From Dimorphilus gyrociliatus (taxonomy: Eukaryota > Animalia > Annelida): DNA of 64,000 bases. The notes under the pieces were generated by a model. The model saw nothing but the letters and a program-made list of their open reading frames with translations, did no database searches and was not told the origin of the DNA. Shown here in pieces: positions 22,383 to 32,205 of the stretch (position 1 is the first letter of the stretch; every line of letters starts with the position of its first letter). The position numbers were made by a program, and so were the translations under genes. The stretch spans positions 3,218,165 through 3,282,164 of the forward strand of contig CAJFCJ010000005.1 in assembly GCA_904063045.1 (NCBI GenBank), in the 5' to 3' direction.

Positions 22383-25300
22383 ATGGATCTTCGCTATAAA
22401 AACCATAAGAGAAGCTATGGTAAAATACATGTTATATTTAAATATTAATAAAATTATTAAGTCAAACAATTAAACATATCATTTAGGAAAAACATCGACA
22501 AAAAAGTCATTCAATTTAGATTGTCCTGTTAATTTAAGATCATTTTACATCTTGAAAGGATTACCCTTAATGAAATTAATATATGAAGTACAGAAATTTT
22601 TGAAAGGTGTAAAATCAACGATGAGATATTTTTTCTCATCTTCTATAGAGAATGAACGTGAGGTTCTTGTATATTTTTATCCGCCGATTGGTAAATATCT
22701 TTTTTGTTATGAATTAAACACTTTTATAATCCTCTTTTATTCGTTTTTCTTCGGATAGACCATAAAGATCTTCTCCATTATTTGAATAAAGCTAATTTTG
22801 GAACAATATCTCTTTATTTGGTACAAGAATGCTCATCATTATCTCTTTACGAGCCTAACCTTACTTATGAGGTAATCGCAAAATTAATGCTGCTTTCTCC
22901 AAATTGTATTATAGAAAAGACAAAAGCAAATCATTTTAAGGTTAACTTTCAAGGAGAGGACGTCGCATGTATGAATATAACAAATCTTCGTTGCATTAGA
23001 TCAGTAACTAATTTTTACTTGTATAGTTTTACGGAAGGTATTGTTGGATAGAATATGGTACCAAGGAAAACCTCTGGATTTTGTTCCAATAATCAGACAC
23101 TTTAAGATTAGTCCAGATAAATTTGACTACTCAATTCCAAGAAATAACATAATTGATCGATTTGAATATCCAACAGAATATGTTTCTTTTATCATATTTT
23201 CTCCCTATTTTCGCAAAAAACTGTTTGATACTTTACGACACCAAGACGCCAATTTTCAAATAAAGAGGATTGATCAGGTTCTTGAAATAACTTACCGTTT
23301 TAAAAGATCAAAGCAAATCTTAAATGAAAATTCGTCACGTATTTGGAAAATAAAAGTAGAAGAGGAATTGGCAGATTTTTTCAAAAAACTAGTGCAAATC
23401 AAAGTTGAAGATGGTTTCTTTTATAAAATACCATCAGGCAGAGATTTGCGTATAAATGGTGTATTAGTTGAATATTGTTCAAATCCTCCTCATATTAAAT
23501 TAACAGGATCACGTGAACATATTGTAAAGATTGAAAAAATTATGAAAAATCTAAACACATCGTGTAAAACTCTTGATATTAATACTAGGGATCCAGCTGT
23601 TAAACAGTTCTTGTTACAAAATGGTCTACTTGATGAACTGAGAAAGAAATATGTAATAGTTTTACTCTTAAATGACGATAATTCTAGAACTTATAGAATT
23701 TTTAGCTGTTCAAGTGATGAACATTCTATAAGGAGCTTTATTCAACAACAAGAAAATTTTATTAAAAGTAGAAAAATTGATGTAATCCACCAAAAACATC
23801 TTCTCAAAAAGTTGAAATTTTTCATAAAAAATGATGAAGACTATTGTTTAATATATGATGAACAGTCCACTTTTATTGCTGCTCAATCAAATGAAACTTT
23901 GGACATTATTGAAAGTTATCTATTGAGTCTTACGTTTGATGACAGTTCTTGTAGCCAAAGTCGTAGAGAGACAGCGATGGAAACGGAAACATATACATCA
24001 AATCCATGTAAGTCTAGTGCTAGCGAGAACGTGAAAGACAATAAATTGTCATATTTCGAAAGACAAATAGAAATATCAGAGGAAACGTACATTAATTGGA
24101 GCTACGAATTGACCCAAATTGAAAATAGTAATCCCATAGAGATATTATACAAAAGAGAACCGAAATTTTATACAAATCTTGTTATACGTGGAGAAGCTAA
24201 ATGTGTTGACAAGACGTATAATTTAATAAATATGTTAAAGTGTGAACAAGTTAATGGAATTTCTAACATATGTAATGATGAGGAGCATATATGTTATTTA
24301 TCCAAACTATACAAAAACAATAATGGTAAAATGGAATATAGATACAAACTTCACTCTCTAAATGATATTACTTATATTATCTGCCCACCATTTATTCAAA
24401 ATATTAGAAAACATAATGATCAAATATGTAAAGTCATAGTTTCTCATCATTTCGATAAGCTTTATACGCAAGCAATTGTAATTAATTCTTATACAAAGAT
24501 CGCTTATTTCTCTAAAGAAGTTAGAAGAAAATTTGAAGAAACAAAAAGCAAACAGAAAGTCATTGATGAGTTTTGTCAACTTCAGCAACAAAGAATATTT
24601 TATATTTCAAACCCTTCTTATTTGAAGAAAGAGAATTTTGAAGATTGTCTCGAAAGATCTAATAAATATCAATATAAATCTATTCAATTTTCATTAATAC
24701 AAGAAACCCACTGTTCCAGAGAAAGTGAATTAACACCTGAAAAAGTTGCTGAAACGATTTTAGATGCTATTTTTTCAAAAATTATATCTTTCAACAGCCT
24801 TGAAATAATTCACATAAACACTCGAAACGAAAAACAAACTAATGACATATTACCATTGCTATTGGAAAGAGTTAACACTCTAACTACTAATACTGATAGC
24901 AAATGTCTTGTAAAATGGTCCAACTATCCATCTTCTATTGTTAACATAGAATATGGCTCACTGAGCGACCAACAAGCAGACATAATTGCCTATGGAGCCG
25001 GGGAACAACTAGAAAGTAGCATACTCTCAAAATTATTGTTGGAGAAGGCAGGATATCAATTACAAACAGAATTTGATTCGAAAAAGTATCAGGAAAAAGA
25101 AATTATTGAAACAAAAGGTTATAACCTTAATTGTAAATATGTTTTTCACACACGTTTTAAACTATACGAATATGACCGAGACCTTTCAGTAAGTTGTACA
25201 TTAAATCATATTTTGTTCCTATATTTTGTTTTTTGTAATCATTTGTCAGAATATGGCTGATGTATTAGCTAAATGCTTTCGGAGAGCAGGGTTACTAAAT

Positions 25301-26418
25301 GCAAAGACTTTTTCTCTTCCACTAGTTGGGTCAGGGATTTTAAAGTATCCAGAGGAAAGTGTAATTAGTTTAGTAAAAACTATTGGCAATACTGTAGGCC
25401 GAAGACATGGTCTGAGAAGGATTACTATTGTGGTTATTGATCCTGGTATTTATAGGGTAAGTAGACATTATATATCTATATATTTACGATTAATCACTAA
25501 AGATTTTTTTGCGAAAGGCATTACAAAATCACGTAAAGACAGTCAGTCCTATTTGGGAAAATTGTTATGATAATTTTATCCTTTATGATAGAATAAATTT
25601 ATATGTAAGTTGTATCCAAGTGGAAAGCTTTTCCTTTTATTGAGCTATATATCTCTATCTTTATAGATTTGCGTTAAGAAAATGACAGAATCAACTTTTG
25701 AAAAAACAGCTTACGTGTACTTTTACCAAAATTCGCAGCATAAAGAGTTTGAGAGAATAGAGCAAATCCATCAAATATCTAGAAAGGAAATTTTGGAAAA
25801 AGCGAAAAAATCGGATACTTTCCTTATAAGTGATAAATGTATTTTTTCGAAATTGGGTAAAGAAAAGAAACAAGAAATATCTACAGTTTTAGACTTTGCA
25901 CATAGACATAAAATAGATTCACTTAGCTTTCCTTATTCATCAAGTAATATTTAACTTATAATAATTCTTATAAATGACAATTTGTTATAATTTTTCCAGT
26001 TCAACACTCAAGTTTGGAACGAAATGATAGTATTAAGGATTTTGTTAGTAATATAGAACATTACTTTAAGACGAAATATATTAGTATATCCATCAAAAGA
26101 ATTAATATAATAGCAAATTGCGGCGAGCAAGCCCGTCAATATACACGAGAAATGTTACTTAAATGTTGTGAGTACATTCAAATAACACCATTAAAGTTTA
26201 TTTGTAAAGATTAATTAATAACAAATTTCATTAGATCAAAATATAGAAGTAAGATTATTCGGAAAAGAATTGAATATTCTTAAAGATAAATTTAAAGAAT
26301 TAGCAGAAGAAATTGATAAAGAAGTTTATTACTAAAAACTGCAAATTGTGACACTATTGTAGGATTTACAAAATTCCATAATATAAATATACTATAGTTT
26401 GTTAATAACATAAAATAA
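22383..26418 (+). CDS. PARP14-like multidomain protein B, inverted paralogue of protein A; macrodomains but no ART domain; 3' end probably frameshifted
   Basis: MDLRYKNHKRSY|GKTS..VLVYFYPPIG| shares an intron position with gene A. The large exon aligns with A (EYVSFIIFSPYFRKKLFDTLR versus EFTSFIIFSVEYRRKLFDCLR). Macrodomain IEYGSLSDQQADIIAY..LSKLLLEKAGYQLQ..TKGYNLNCKYVFH | ..TFSLPLVGSGILKYP. Confidence 0.78.
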
Positions 26419-26922
26419 AGTAAAAGAAATCTGCAGTAAATGCTACAAATTACGAATAAACGAAAGGAACATTTATATCTTGGGATTTATGAATGAAATT
26501 ATGGAATTGAAAAACCTTATCGTAGTATATGTTATTCATTCAGACTCTCTTAATAATCTGTTTATGGCTTGTCCCTCTCATTTTTTAGAAATATTTAAAA
26601 CTATCAAACAATTACGTGACTCTTTAATATTGATATTGATTGAACTTGTTTAAACAAATTAAATGAGGTAAAGCGATTTTTGTGCTATTCCTTTTTCGAA
26701 AAATACTTAATAACAAAATAATAAATCGTTTAAAGGGAATTACACTCTGTCGCTATTTTAGGAAAAAAAAACCCTATTTATTCTTTCAGTTTCAGATTAT
26801 ACAGTATACTGTATATAATCTGCCTAGAATAAGGCAGCTTCATTTAACTTCAAAAGTTAACCATTACTGTTCCTATTGAGAAGGCTGATTAAATTCAGCT
26901 GAAAAAGTGTTAAATTTTCAGT

Positions 26923-29805
26923 ATGTTTAAAATTGGTTCCACATTAATGGGGGCCGGAGTAGGATTTGTTGCAGGTGGCCCAGTTGGAGCAATTATAGGC
27001 GGTGTTACAGGTAGGCTGCTAACATTCGAGAATTATTAGCTTAACGAGATTTATACAATATTCTGAATAGTTATTTTAAAGTCAGAGGAGAAAGATGTTT
27101 TAATTGTTTGATAAATATTAAAATTATTTTTTGCAGGCTTACTTGCAGCAACTGTAAACAAGAATGATGTTTCGAATAGTATGAAAAATTTAAAATTGAT
27201 GTCATTCATATCATTTGTTTATATGAGTAAAAAATAGACAGCTATCCGCAGAAAGTTCATTGTGATCCTACAAAATTGGTCGAAAGTGATAGTGCGTATA
27301 TTTTTAAGAAATACAGCTTTTACATTCAAATTCTACTAATTTAGTAAGCCATAATCTTCATGTTAAGTGTCTTGAGTGTTTAAATAGACAGTAGCTTCCC
27401 GTCATTCTGGCAAGATTCGGACAATAGAATTGAAGATGCCACCGTTTCAGTTTTAAGAGGTTCAAATGAATATGAAGATGTTGAAAGACGAATAGCTAGA
27501 AGTATATCAGGAGAACAATGTGTCACAATTAAAAAAGTATTTTTATTATTCATAACCAACATTTATATTTACTTCATTTCTACTATATTCAGATTTTGAG
27601 AGTACAAAATACAGATCTATTCTCTCAATATCGTTTATATAAAGAGAAAATTGATAAAGAAATTAAGGGAAATTCGGATATAGCGCCAGTTTATCATGGA
27701 ACCGAAGAGGATGTTGCAATCAAGCTATGTTTTAAGGGATTTAACAGAAATTTCAATAAAACGGGTTTGAAAAAAATTTATAAATAAAAATTTATCATCG
27801 TTTAGTAGTTAAATTGTTAATAGGGGCATATGGAAAAGGCTCTTATTTTGCTCGAGATATCAAATATTCACTACGTAATCCATACAGTCCTATAAATGAG
27901 CATGGAGAAAAATTTATTTTCGAATGTCAAATTGTCGCTGGAAAGTATTGTAACGGGCATGGTAAAATGAAAGAACCTCCAGAAGGATATCACTCAACAG
28001 TTGATAACGAGAACAATCCAACATTATTTTCAATTTATCACGATAGTGGAAGTTATCAACTATGGTTAATCATTCTTCAGACTGCATCCAAGCCAATACA
28101 AGGAAATTTGCAAGGTATTTTAATATAATACAAGTTATAAAAACTTTTCAACGAAATGTGAAAACAATTGCAGATCTAGATGAGAGACTTGCCAAAAAAA
28201 TGTCTCCAGCGAAATGGAGGGAATGCCTCGATTGTTAGTAGTATGGATGTTTAAATATCCATTGACAAACTGTACAAATTGTAATTTATCGAAAATTTAA
28301 GATAGAGATATGGATTCACTTACGCTAGAAAATTTGAATTTCCCCGATATTTATAAAAGTAAAGGTAAAGAGGATATACCTTTGACGTGGGAAAAGGAAG
28401 GATCTAGATTGAAAGTTGGACTTGTTGAAATAGGGGCAAACAGCAACGAATTTAATGATATCAGTCAGCGTCTAATAGATTTGTCAAGAAAAAATCGTTT
28501 CACAATAAAAAATGTATAGTTGCTTTTCATAATCCTAAAATAGTAAAATTATATTGTTTATGACCAAAAATAGATTTATAGAAATCAGAATAAGGAGTTT
28601 TATAAACTATACATCGCTAGAAGGAAGGCTGTAGCAAAAAAACGAAATATCAAGAAAGTTGAATGGCCGGGAGTTTATTATGAAACATCTGATATGAAAG
28701 CAGGAAGAAAGATATGCTCCAAAGGATTTAATAGAAGTTTTTCCACAAAAAGTTCTAATCAATTAATAATTTTTTACAATTCAATATTTAAAGAATCTGA
28801 TTCAATATATAAATGCATATAATAATGTTATTCCATATCAAAACTTACTCTATTTAACTTTCTCTTTCCTTTAGCTTATCTTGGAGAGGGAACATACTTT
28901 CATAGGACTTCCGCTGGAGTTCTTAAAGAACAAGAATCTGAAGGTAAACTTGAAGGGCAAAAAATTTTGTTAGAATGTCAAATTATTGTTGGATGCTTCT
29001 GTCAAGGATATCTAGATATGAAAGAGCCTGCTAATAATTGCGACTCCACTGTTGACAATATGGATAATCCAAATGAATTTTCAATTTATCATGATAGTGA
29101 TGCCTACCCAGCTTACTTAATTGTTTTTGAAAATGAAACGGAGCGTATCTTGTATACTTCGTCTATATTCAGAATTGTAAAAGATAGAATTGAAAATCAA
29201 AAATCTGATATAATTGCATATAGCTCTCCTTTTACAATGGATTTAAGCTCAAGTAATATTCCACAGTCCTTATGGAATAAAGCAGGAAATGAATTACAAC
29301 AGGAATGTAAGCAGAAGCAGGGAAGTGTAAAATCTGGTGAAATAATTGTAACTGGTGGTTATAACCTTCATTGTAAGAAAATTTTTCATTTAATGTTGGA
29401 AAAGTGTACCAGTTCGTCTGACCATTCGGTAGGTTTCTTAAATTCGTATAAAGTAAGTAAAATATTCACTTCTAATACAACCATTAAAGAAACTAGAAGA
29501 AATAATAAGAAAATGTGTAAAAAAAGCAAAAGATACGAATGCAAAAAGTTTTTCGATACCTGTACTTGGAACAGGAATTCTTAATTATCCTATAGATCTT
29601 TCTTTAAATACAATTAAGAAAATAGGTGAAGAAATATGTGGAGACGGCAGTTTAGAAATTACCATGGTTATATTCGAAGACGACCCTAAACTCTATGATA
29701 TTAAGGATGTTTGTAAAAATACTTTTCGATATTTGTATAAATATAAGAAATTTTAAAAATGATTTTTTGTTTGAACAGGCAGCTAAGAAAATCTTTGGCT
29801 TTTAA
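26923..29805 (+). CDS. Gly-zipper N-terminus + two tandem PARP/ART catalytic domains + C-terminal macrodomain
   Basis: Spliced model: MFKIGSTLMGAGVGFVAGGPVGAIIGGVTG|LLAATV.. ; ART1 with VYHGT (27689-27703), YGKGSYFARDIKYS, CQIVAG, STVDNENNPTLFSIYHD; ART2 with VYYET, LGEGTYFHRTSAG, CQIIVG, STVDNMDNPNEFSIYHDSDAYPAYLI; macrodomain IVKDRIENQKSDIIAY..VTGGYNLHCKKIFH|..SFSIPVLGTGILNYP..|AAKKIFGF*. All junctions are phase-compatible GT-AG. Confidence 0.85.
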
Positions 29806-30012
29806 GTTGAAAACGGAAGTATTAACATAACACTTTTGATCAGAAAGTACTTTATCCTTATGATAAAATCATATTTTATATTATAACTAGTTTTATTTGT
29901 GAAGGATTGTCTGAAAAATGAAATATTTAACTCTGTTTTAACCATTGCTGTTGCTTTGTATTCAATATATCTTTTTCTTATTTTATCATCAACCGCCTTA
30001 TGAAATAAAATT

Positions 30013-30417
30013 TTATTTCCCCATTTTAATAGGTGTACAAACTTCTATTAAGAAACCGTTTATATCACGAAGATATCCCACCTTTTGACCCCACGGTTTC
30101 TCAATAACACTCTCTGCCAACGTGGCTCCAGCGTTTAAAGCCTGTTGAAAATCTTCATCAATATTTTCAGTTGTAAATGCCAATTCAATACCAAAAGCCT
30201 TTTGATCAAGTGAGCTATGTTGAAAACTATTACCAGACTTTAAATTTTGATTAGCTAATTCAAAATTAGCGAAAGATATTGTTGTTTCACCAGAAATTAA
30301 TTCACCATAATCATTCTCCCCAGTTACAAATTTCTCCTTAAATCCAAAAGCATTTTTATAAAATTCAATTGTTTTTGGAACGTTTGCAACATAAAGAATA
30401 GTATACGCAAATTTCAT
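30013..30417 (-). CDS. Bacterial-type VOC/glyoxalase-bleomycin resistance family protein, intronless (HGT candidate)
   Basis: 134 aa with YTILYV..TIEFYKNAFG, DYGEL.SG.TTISFA, GIELAFTT and KPWGQKVGYLRDINGFLIEVCTP, which are classic bacterial VOC-fold motifs. Confidence 0.9.
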   Translation of the reverse strand: MKFAYTILYVANVPKTIEFYKNAFGFKEKFVTGENDYGELISGETTISFANFELANQNLKSGNSFQHSSLDQKAFGIELAFTTENIDEDFQQALNAGATLAESVIEKPWGQKVGYLRDINGFLIEVCTPIKMGK

Positions 30418-30820
30418 TATATTTGATTTCTTGCCACAATATTTTTCTCTTATAATAAAATAATAAGCGGGCCTATTTCTTATTTTGTAGATATCACGTG
30501 ATCGCCTCCATCTTGTCTTTTAGTATTAAATAAATAAAAAGTTGAGTCTTTTAACAATTTAAATTCTATAGCGTTTAAAGAAGTTACTCTCGATATTTTC
30601 TTCAATAATCATCCATTTATAATAGTCTTCATTGTAAAAAATGGAAAATTTAGGCAGATCTTTCAATTAATCTTATAAAACAATCAGATGTCACATAATA
30701 CAGTATAGGCTTTTATAGACTGAAATAGTGAGAAATTGGAATTTTTCGTTTCTATTTTCGTTTTCTAGTAATCGGTTATTCTGAATAAATTTCTCAATTA
30801 TTTAGATCGCATGAATTAAA

Positions 30821-31800
30821 ATGAACACTTATGGACCTTTAATAGCAGGATTGGTTCAAGGCATTTCTGGAGCTTTAAATGAAGGTTCAGCCGGTCTTCT
30901 TCCTGGATTTGTGCAAGGAGTGCAAGGAGTGCGAGGAGTGCAAGGAGTGCAAGGAGTTTTAAATGATAATATTCATAGGAGGGGGAGAGTAAATGGTAAA
31001 TATAATTTTTGCTTTAGAACCAACAATTTTCAAATAAATTATGATTATTTTTCGGTAAAGCCAGTAGACGAATTTCAAGTGCGCCGACTTCATCCTATCC
31101 AGAATTTGTAGAAGGAGAGATCCTTTTTGATGTAGCTCCTTTCCGAATTGTAAAAGACAGACTCGAGAAGCAAACGTGTGATGTTATAGCATACGCCGCT
31201 CCTTTTTCAATGAATCTAAATGCAACTCCACTATCTAAATTACTGTTGAAAGAGGCAGGACATGAATTGCAGATTTCGTGCAATAGAGCAAAACAGAATG
31301 GTGTATTTGCTGATGATATTATTTCAACTGAAGGTTATAACCTTAAAAGCAAACTAGTTTTTCACATGATGATAGAAAAGAATGCTTCCTCTCGTGGTTA
31401 TTCGGTAAGGTCTTATATCTCTCTATATATTTCTCTTTCGTAAAATACAGTAAGTTTAATTGCTTATGAATGTTTTTAGTATATAAGTAAAATGATAAGG
31501 AAATGCTTCGAAAGAGCTAAGGCTGAGAACGCGAAAAGCATTGCAATTCCTATTATCGGTTCAGGAAAGCTTGGTTATTCCATGGAGGAGAGTTTAAAAG
31601 CAATAAAAGATGAAGGCTTAAAATTAATAAAGCAGTGTCAAGAGTGCTCTTGCTACCCTTTAACTATCACGGTGGTAATATTCGGAGGAGATCCTCAATA
31701 TAATGCAATAAAGAGAGTAAGTACATAATGTTTCTCTATACATATGTTTATTAATGAATCTATAATATAGACAGCTGAACAAATATTCTGCTCTGAATGA
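30821..31800 (+). CDS. Stand-alone macrodomain protein with a Gly-rich N-terminus (4 exons)
   Basis: MNTYGPLIAGLVQG..GVQGVRGVQGVQG..|..FRIVKDRLEKQTCDVIAYAAP..PLSKLLLKEAGHELQ..STEGYNLKSKLVFH..|..KSIAIPIIGSGKLGY..|TAEQIFCSE*. Intron positions match the macrodomain of the 26923-29805 gene. Confidence 0.82.
30911..30956 (+). repeat. Coding 9-bp tandem repeat (GTGCAAGGA)x5 encoding VQG/VRG
   Basis: gtgcaaggag tgcaaggagt gcgaggagtg caaggagtgc aaggag. Confidence 0.9.
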
Positions 31801-32205
31801 TTCATGGATTCTACTTAAATATTTAGATGAAGTTATTTGATTGATCATTTGAAGATTCAATAAAATAGCTGCAAGTTCTTGGAGTGGAATATTTACGCAA
31901 TTTACAAAGTATTTAAAGCATGCATAAAAAAGAATACATTATTCATTTATATACTATATATTGAGTTATTTCAATTCTGTTATATAAATTTTAATAGTTA
32001 TTTTTAGTAATCCGTTAAAATTATTTTAATATCTTTATTGGTGTTTATGAAATGCAAGTTATTGCTAAAGATTTAATGTGTCTAACTCTACCAGTTTTTA
32101 AGTTGCGCTTTTTTTTTTTTGAACGATAATAGACACTTTGCGCCGACCGTAATTTACCGTCATATGACAAAAGGGGAGTAACTTCTAATGTTCTAGACAA
32201 TTAAT

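Follow-up and report, generated by a model that had tools for sequence, protein, structure and literature searches.

The macro-PARPs that carry out mono-ADP-ribosylation evolve fast and act in antiviral and stress responses, and little is understood of how they are regulated. Here we describe DgyrCDS3852, a gene of the annelid Dimorphilus gyrociliatus that encodes, in one spliced frame, a hydrophobic leader with a glycine zipper, two successive ADP-ribosyltransferase (ART) domains (ART1 and ART2) and a macrodomain at the C-terminal end. The gene lies at 26923-29805 (+) of a 64,000-nucleotide (nt) stretch of genomic DNA, hereafter the window (assembly GCA_904063045.1, contig CAJFCJ010000005.1, positions 3,218,165 to 3,282,164 of the forward strand), and was matched via its public protein record in a protein search. 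DgyrCDS3852 is an expressed, lineage-specific macro-PARP gene and an architectural variant new within the macro-PARP family. ART1 carries the predicted residue set of a mono-ART, while the pattern of losses in ART2 is typical of a folded pseudo-enzyme; on balance, and by analogy with dimeric PARP15, we favour by a modest measure the view that the product as a whole is best explained as a membrane-tethered mono-ART in which the dead ART2 would serve as a built-in partner.

Gene structure and transcript support

Introns and exons were checked against the contigs of the single public run (X1) that contains this stretch, over 26300-32200 of the window. The X1 contigs lack introns and therefore represent an RNA assembly; since they chain neighbouring genes, only splice joints were counted as evidence and contig continuity was left aside. 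The revised model comprises 12 exons (2046 nt, 681 codons) separated by 11 GT..AG introns of 56-126 nt; the window is AT-rich (about 29% G+C), its introns measuring roughly 60 nt. All 11 introns were seen as GT..AG joints in the RNA contigs, and intron ends and split codons were checked for each. An earlier note, made from the sequence alone, had proposed one spliced frame, and all ten of its introns match GT..AG joints in the contigs. Its exon list holds for every exon drawn but misses one, as its second intron (27179-27387) contains an additional exon of 54 nt (27238-27291) that is entered and left in phase 1. The revised model is as follows:

26923-27010 (+): exon 1, start codon and glycine-zipper leader; RNA joint 27010>27137, in-frame stop upstream at 26911-26913
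27137-27178 (+): exon 2, end of the hydrophobic stretch (LLAATV) and polar flank; RNA joints, split codons
27238-27291 (+): exon 2b, 18-codon linker absent from the earlier and the public models; joints 27178>27238 and 27291>27388, GT..AG
27388-27536 (+): exon 3, N-terminal helices of ART1 (P-x-x-W ... E-Y), ending on TIKK in phase 0; alignment with the PARP15 ART from its first residues, RNA joint
27593-27764 (+): exon 4, ART1 His-Gly (27695-27700) and the Arg of GFNR (27746-27748, PARP15 R576), ending in phase 1; alignments
27824-28114 (+): exon 5, ART1 triad Tyr (27844-27846), Tyr-Ser (27865-27870), triad Leu (28024-28026) and Asp (28042-28044, PARP15 D665); Pfam PARP and PARP15 match
28174-28233 (+): exon 6, 20-codon linker leading from ART1 to ART2 in frame; joints 28114>28174 and 28233>28302
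28302-28513 (+): exon 7, N-terminal part of ART2, ending on TIKN in phase 0 at the same position as exon 3; BLASTP against exon 3 E 9e-6, RNA joint
28574-28751 (+): exon 8, ART2 with Y-Y-E-T (28676-28687) for His-Gly, the Arg of GFNR kept (28733-28735), phase 1 end as in exon 4; alignments
28875-29152 (+): exon 9, first half, C-terminal half of ART2 with triad Tyr (28895-28897), Glu at triad position 3 (29075-29077) and Asp (29093-29095); 43% identity to exon 5
29153-29428 (+): exon 9, second half, unbroken, N-terminal half of the macrodomain with Tyr for the Asn of V-N (29219-29221), Ser for the loop-1 Gly (29252-29254) and the Gly of K-A-G kept (29285-29287); Pfam Macro 31 bits
29490-29708 (+): exon 10, C-terminal half of the macrodomain, G-T-G phosphate loop from 29568; Pfam Macro 24 bits
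29779-29805 (+): exon 11, last 8 codons and stop; RNA joint 29708>29779

Joints 28114>28174 and 28233>28302 tie ART1 through the linker exon to ART2 in frame, which provides the RNA evidence for one transcript. The alternative that two adjacent genes had been merged, an ART1 gene and an ART2-macrodomain gene, might draw on the fact that the Logan contigs cross neighbouring genes, such that continuity by itself proves nothing; however, the last ART1 exon, the linker exon and the first ART2 exon are connected by in-frame GT..AG joints, and the public annotation likewise calls a single gene. On account of these joints we rejected the two-gene reading, to which we attach next to no weight. A fusion with the macrodomain-rich gene upstream was rejected as well: no splicing is seen in the RNA over 26300-27007, the start codon is closely preceded by an in-frame stop (26911-26913) and the upstream gene is annotated to about 26335. 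Further along, ART2 passes into the macrodomain within one uninterrupted exon (28875-29428); the ART-then-macrodomain order is therefore real, and the macrodomain is C-terminal as the earlier note had it.

The public model of DgyrCDS3852 (P0001) has 509 residues, compared to 681 in the RNA-supported model. Set against the RNA contigs, it joins exon 1 straight to exon 3, thus skipping exons 2 and 2b, and it lacks the tail of exon 7, the whole of exon 8 and the core of the macrodomain (about 29372-29624). Pfam accordingly reports a single PARP domain on the 509-residue model and scores its macrodomain at 21 bits, below the cutoff of 22. Thus, the DgyrCDS3852 product has about 681 residues and the public gene model is mis-spliced, and databases therefore do not display the ART-ART-macrodomain architecture.

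Domain content and relation to known macro-PARPs

ART1 (residues 30-240 of P0001) is recognised by the Pfam PARP model (PF00644) with 56.9 bits, against a gathering cutoff of 26.7, and aligns end to end with the catalytic domains of human PARP15 (expectation value, E, 1.8e-21), PARP10 and PARP14 (3e-19). In the PARP15 alignment its His corresponds to H559, the adjacent Gly to G560, the Tyr of G-S-Y-F-A to Y591, the Tyr-Ser of KYS to Y598-S599 and the Leu of P-T-L-F to L659. The H-Y-L triad that had been proposed for ART1 thus stands, but the Tyr assigned to it, in IKYS, is the second, nicotinamide-stacking Tyr (PARP15 Y598); the triad Tyr is that of G-S-Y-F-A (27844-27846). With all mono-ART residues present and aligned to PARP15, the mono-ART reading of ART1 is borne out at the level of predicted residues: as judged by alignment, ART1 is a PARP15/14-type H-Y-L mono-ART with a complete residue set.

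ART2 is the sole other ART-like sequence found in the window when it was searched for matches to ART1. Paired exons of the two domains align in BLASTP with 29% identity (E 9e-6), 30% (E 7e-7) and, over the C-terminal half, 43% (E 4e-25), and both copies are interrupted at the same places, after TIKK or TIKN in phase 0 and inside the codon following NKT or STK in phase 1, as the earlier note had observed. In a quick maximum-likelihood tree of the C-terminal half with 118 other ARTs, ART1 and ART2 (together with one long-branch sequence) were split from the rest with an SH-like approximate likelihood ratio test (SH-aLRT) value of 91. Internal duplication is the simplest reading of these similarities.

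The two copies differ at the positions that contact nicotinamide adenine dinucleotide (NAD). When 116 ARTs of the best database relatives were aligned, the following conserved residues proved to be replaced in ART2:

His of H-G-T (114/116 relatives): Glu, or Tyr if a one-residue gap is allowed
Gly of H-G-T (114/116 relatives): Thr, or Glu if a one-residue gap is allowed
Tyr of Y-S (110/116 relatives): Gly
Ser of Y-S (113/116 relatives): Val
Ala of Y-F-A (97% of relatives): His

The substitution of YYET for YHGT that had been read in ART2 is right in that His and Gly are both gone, but it needs the one-residue gap, whereas without a gap the His is aligned with Glu and the Gly with Thr; the loss of the YS tyrosine holds without qualification, Tyr-Ser being replaced by Gly-Val. 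ART2 nevertheless retains 33 of the 52 strongly conserved columns (37 in ART1), including GFNR, the G-x-G-x-Y-F strand, the V/I-L-x-G strand and the C-terminal D-x-x-A-Y-P-x-Y-L-I-x-F, a motif that is better preserved in ART2 than in ART1. At this C-terminal motif, the supposedly live ART1 is the more diverged of the two. Scanned singly, ART2 exons 7, 8 and 9 gave no Pfam PARP match, while the C-terminal half of ART2 matched the structure of ZAP (2x5y, E 9e-6). With NAD-contacting residues lost and columns of the fold core retained, the pseudo-ART status proposed for ART2 is upheld by the alignment, and this pattern of loss and retention is typical of what would be expected of a folded pseudo-enzyme.

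The Glu that had been noticed at the third triad position of ART2 is present (29075-29077). Among the 116 macro-PARP ARTs, this position is Met in 61, Ile in 31, Val in 6, Glu in 6 and Leu in 4. H-Y-E macro-PARPs, with Glu at this position (6/116), thus occur among invertebrate relatives.

Both exons that encode the macrodomain exceed the Pfam Macro (PF01661) gathering cutoff of 22 bits, exon 9 with 31 bits and exon 10 with 24. Its nearest solved structures are those of PARP14 macro2 (E 5e-9 to 8e-9), followed by macro3 and the macrodomains of PARP9. Of the 19 columns that are strongly conserved among 147 related macrodomains, 12 are unchanged. The Asp that contacts adenine and the G-T-G loop are retained, as is the Gly of K-A-G, which is 100% conserved. 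Index mapping of the 3q71 and 3vfq chains suggests that this Gly is equivalent to PARP14 G1055, the residue at which the G1055E exchange abolishes recognition of mono-ADP-ribose (PMC5127640, PMC4381061).

In the leader, Gly recurs at residues 10, 14, 18, 22, 26 and 30, the last of these rungs being a codon split across intron 1 (G|GC). The GxxxG motif named in the earlier note is therefore a ladder of six rungs spaced at i+4. No second ladder of this kind occurs in any of the six reading frames of the window, and about 1e-5 would be expected by chance. The hydrophobic stretch extends over about 33 residues, and exon 1 has a mean Kyte-Doolittle hydropathy of 1.3. Matches of the leader to the glycine-zipper families of Pfam were non-significant (E 0.38-0.52). 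The leader conforms to the pattern of a transmembrane glycine zipper, (G/A/S)xxxG repeated along a hydrophobic helix, and a membrane role is predicted from motif and hydropathy.

To place the architecture among known proteins, exon 9, which spans the junction of ART2 and macrodomain, was searched against 1.84 billion representatives, and the best 150 of the 802 matches were mapped for ART and macrodomain segments. Among these 150, a macrodomain follows an ART only in the public model of DgyrCDS3852 itself; in all other matches with both domains, the macrodomains come before the ART. As only the best 150 of 802 were mapped, rarity is supported, not proven. A word-indexed protein search with P0001 returned P0001 itself only and is uninformative on distant relatives, and the look-alikes in the ESM Atlas, clusters with PARP and Macro domains at scores of at most 0.85, come without domain order and are likewise not informative. 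An open-access literature search for tandem PARP domains or a C-terminal macrodomain gave nothing relevant, and the earlier note likewise knew of no account of this architecture. The search for the ART-ART-macrodomain order thus yielded no second macrodomain-after-ART protein among the best 150 matches, but tandem ARTs as such are not unique. The PARP14-like protein XP_019644301.1 (P0035) of Branchiostoma belcheri has two ARTs, both with His-Gly, behind N-terminal macrodomains and without a leader, and XP_068101919.1 (P0066) of Hyperolius riggenbachi consists of ART-ART only, the copies being near-identical and both with His-Gly, with neither macrodomain nor leader.

The macro-PARP subfamily (PARP9/14/15) carries its macrodomain or macrodomains N-terminal to a single C-terminal ART, whereas DgyrCDS3852 has the order ART-ART-macrodomain. 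Human PARP15 and PARP14 (ARTD7/ARTD8; 4f0e, 3blj, 3goy) resemble ART1 in the H-Y-L triad, His-Gly, Tyr-Ser and GFNR; compared to them, DgyrCDS3852 lacks the N-terminal macrodomains and the WWE, KH and RRM modules, adds a dead second ART, a macrodomain after the ART and an N-terminal hydrophobic leader, and has an ART1 without the Pro of A-Y-P. PARP14 macro2 (3q71, 5o2d, 3vfq), the best structural relative of the macrodomain, shares the Asp, G-T-G and the invariant Gly and is likewise non-hydrolytic, whereas in DgyrCDS3852 the Asn of V-N-S is Tyr, the loop-1 Gly is Ser, and the domain is present as a single copy placed after the ART. The pseudo-ARTs of PARP9 and PARP13/ZAP resemble ART2 in having the ART fold with the triad His and the NAD contacts gone; unlike them, ART2 arose independently from ART1 and shares its chain with an intact ART. 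PARP9 and PARP13/ZAP belong to antiviral, interferon-linked gene families (PMC10221186). As to the leader, DgyrCDS3852 and PARP16 would be alike in combining a mono-ART with a hydrophobic helix, but the anchor is at the C-terminus in PARP16 and in an N-terminal leader here. PARP16 (ARTD15) is a mono-ART of a different PARP clade that sits on the membrane by a single hydrophobic helix, a C-terminal tail anchor, and has no macrodomain and no second ART.

A proposed mechanism and its alternatives

In the mechanism that we favour, ART1 would be the sole catalytic centre, transferring single ADP-ribose units, and ART2, predicted to bind no NAD, would act as a tethered partner protomer that packs on ART1 via an ART:ART interface of the PARP15/tankyrase type. 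The glycine zipper would tether the protein to a membrane, or insert it into one, and would probably self-associate; the macrodomain may keep the enzyme bound to products that it has mono-ADP-ribosylated or to sites of its auto-modification, the least secure step in view of the altered pocket described below. The PARP15 ART is active only as a dimer, in which R576 and D665 form an interface salt bridge, alongside contacts made by helix alpha-2, and mutants of either residue are monomeric and inactive; a dead H559Y protomer raises the activity of wild-type PARP15, one live protomer being sufficient, and tankyrases have a homologous ART:ART contact (Ebenwaldner et al., Nat Commun 2025, PMC12572374). 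The mixed dimer of wild-type and H559Y PARP15 pairs a live with a dead protomer, as ART1 and ART2 might, and both ARTs have the counterparts of R576 and D665 (Arg at 27746-27748 and 28733-28735, Asp at 28042-28044 and 29093-29095). In contrast to the PARP15 homodimer, ART1 and ART2 are part of one chain and are only 30-43% identical, and their pairing is inferred by analogy; the linker of roughly 55 residues is of sufficient length for two-fold pairing. A more specific version, in which DgyrCDS3852 would be a natural single-chain, PARP15-like live/dead ART heterodimer with the pseudo-ART as obligate allosteric activator, clustered at the membrane by a self-associating zipper, is a tentative proposal that we think has clearly the smaller chance of being right.

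Several observations weigh against the tethered-partner reading. ART1 lacks the Pro of the C-terminal A-Y-P motif, which is invariant in the 116 relatives, its motif (28045-28062) reading S-Y-Q-L-W in place of the A-Y-P-E-Y of the family. Across the family, 98-100% of members keep the R576 and D665 equivalents, and PARP14, a monomer in vitro, is among them; finding both residues in ART2 thus agrees with the dimer idea and is not diagnostic of it. Two near-invariant columns of the macrodomain pocket differ, with Tyr for the Asn of V-N (83% conserved) and Ser for the loop-1 Gly (91%). G-G-P in the middle of the leader leaves room for several topologies, from a single span or a hairpin to a signal anchor or a signal that is cleaved off. 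The RNA support comes from one assembled run, whose contigs carry neither strand nor level, transcript ends or isoform ratios. Finally, no orthologue was found among the best 150 of the 802 exon 9 matches or in the word-indexed search with P0001.

The changed columns of the macrodomain line the distal-ribose and diphosphate site, and they are altered too in the macrodomain of a neighbouring paralogue (described below), which has the same Tyr and a Thr at the loop-1 Gly column; as the variants are common to the two paralogues, the changes predate the duplication and have since been retained. Hydrolase activity is determined by an Asn or Ser and a Gly flanking loop 1 and by a hydrophobic plus an aromatic residue in loop 2 (Delgado-Rodriguez et al., PMC10221186). 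None of these determinants is present in the DgyrCDS3852 macrodomain, in which loop 1 has Tyr and Ser and loop 2 reads G-T-G-I-L-N, and the domain can thus be no more than a reader, one whose pocket is altered. The product reader proposed in the earlier note is thus a plausible candidate ADP-ribose binder in so far as the Asp, G-T-G and the invariant Gly are kept, but the exchanges of Asn for Tyr and of the loop-1 Gly for Ser mean that binding is not assured. A domain that is no ADP-ribose reader at all, but binds a different ligand, either nucleic acid or some related nucleotide, or has only a structural or auto-modification role, would be compatible with the tethered-partner mechanism and is a serious possibility, if one we lean against: macrodomains of other function are known (PMC10221186) and two of the 19 columns strongly conserved in macro2/3 are changed, here and in the neighbouring paralogue, whereas the adenine-contacting Asp, the G-T-G loop and the Gly that index mapping equates with G1055 are kept and single substitutions of catalytic residues usually spare reading, as argued in PMC10221186.

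More radically, ART2, and perhaps the macrodomain too, might be a decaying passenger of a recent-looking internal duplication in a fast-evolving, immune-type family of high turnover, with only ART1 of any consequence. Such decay would fit the want of a Pfam PARP match on single ART2 exons, the lack of an orthologue of this architecture among the best 150 of 802 matches, the altered pocket of the macrodomain and a downstream paralogue that already seems ART-less, with an S-Y-P-E-F trace before its macrodomain. Yet the frame is open through five exons that are correctly spliced in RNA, the losses cluster on NAD contacts while GFNR, G-x-G-x-Y-F, V/I-L-x-G and D-x-x-A-Y-P-x-Y-L-I-x-F are kept, the last of them better in ART2 than in ART1, and the Tyr and Ser/Thr variants of the macrodomain have been retained in two paralogues since their duplication; we consider the passenger reading unlikely. 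Less probable again is that the leader acts as a cleaved signal peptide or a type II anchor that would place the ART domains in a lumen or outside the cell instead of in the cytosol. A hydrophobic N-terminus whose third residue is basic, with no other targeting feature seen, would suit such a role, but its hydrophobic stretch of about 33 residues far exceeds the core of a signal peptide, the neighbouring macrodomain gene bears a similar Gly-rich leader, and PARP-type ARTs are, as a family, users of intracellular NAD. The earlier note had also raised the question of catalysis in trans from complementary triad remnants, the Glu of ART2 (29075-29077) completing the H-Y-L pocket of ART1. HPF1 does supply a catalytic Glu in trans to PARP1/2; however, Glu in this column is normal variation, found in 6 of 116 ordinary macro-PARP ARTs, and in ART2 it would lie on a strand within the domain's own cleft, stripped of the other NAD contacts, from which ART1 could be reached only by domain swapping. 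PARP15 protomers, moreover, work independently (PMC12572374). Composite catalysis was rejected as unsupported, the Glu being ordinary variation, and we give it scarcely any credence. Among the readings considered, the membrane-tethered mono-ART with ART2 as partner remains the one that we prefer.

The locus and wider implications

DgyrCDS3852 belongs to a local group of genes for macrodomain, PARP14-like and leucine-rich repeat (LRR) proteins. Upstream on the + strand, a PARP14-like, macrodomain-rich gene of 1027 residues without an ART (22887-26335) ends 588 nt before DgyrCDS3852, and further upstream lie an UNC-93 gene and, on the - strand at about 12.7-18.6 kilobases (kb), a second macrodomain-rich PARP14-like gene, again without an ART. 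The two ART-less genes might be partners in function, or what is left of a PARP14-like gene that was split. Downstream, a single-exon VOC/glyoxalase gene of 134 residues (30013-30417, -; annotated publicly with Pfam Glyoxalase), gaplessly covered by a strandless RNA contig (29779-30994), separates DgyrCDS3852 from a second leader-bearing gene. This downstream paralogue (30821-31830, +, extending to about 34438 in the public model P0097) has a Gly-rich leader followed by a macrodomain that is 44-49% identical to that of DgyrCDS3852 and has introns at the same two positions. P0097 fuses it to an LRR-helical gene starting near 32197, while the RNA has a joint at 31716>31771 and a contig that ends near 31830, short of this putative fusion. 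In BLASTP, the match between the macrodomain exon of the paralogue and exon 9 runs a few residues upstream into the A-Y-P-x-Y end of ART2 (S-Y-P-E-F in the paralogue), which hints that the paralogue may descend from an ART-macrodomain gene that lost its ART. The locus is thus a cluster of fast-diverging ADP-ribosylation genes.

We also observed that RNA contigs are continuous over 26300-27007 and 29779-30994, chaining three or more neighbouring genes, and that one contig of 6645 nt extends about 5.8 kb upstream of exon 1. This run-on could reflect overlapping untranslated regions, read-through transcription or an assembly artefact.

The order of domains in DgyrCDS3852 indicates that macro-PARP architecture is not fixed, as it places a macrodomain after the ART and adds a predicted membrane leader. 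Its interest is moderate and lies chiefly in offering a natural test of ART-pair activation and of the purpose of pseudo-ARTs, since it resembles the live/dead protomer experiment on PARP15 done by evolution, an intact ART being fused to a duplicate deficient in NAD contacts. If ART2 does activate ART1, DgyrCDS3852 would provide a compact monomeric model for ART:ART activation and for the role of pseudo-ARTs of the PARP9 and PARP13 type. If it is indeed a single-chain heterodimer, activation by ART pairing would be old and general among bilaterian macro-PARPs, and pseudo-ARTs would be able to evolve as dedicated activator subunits.

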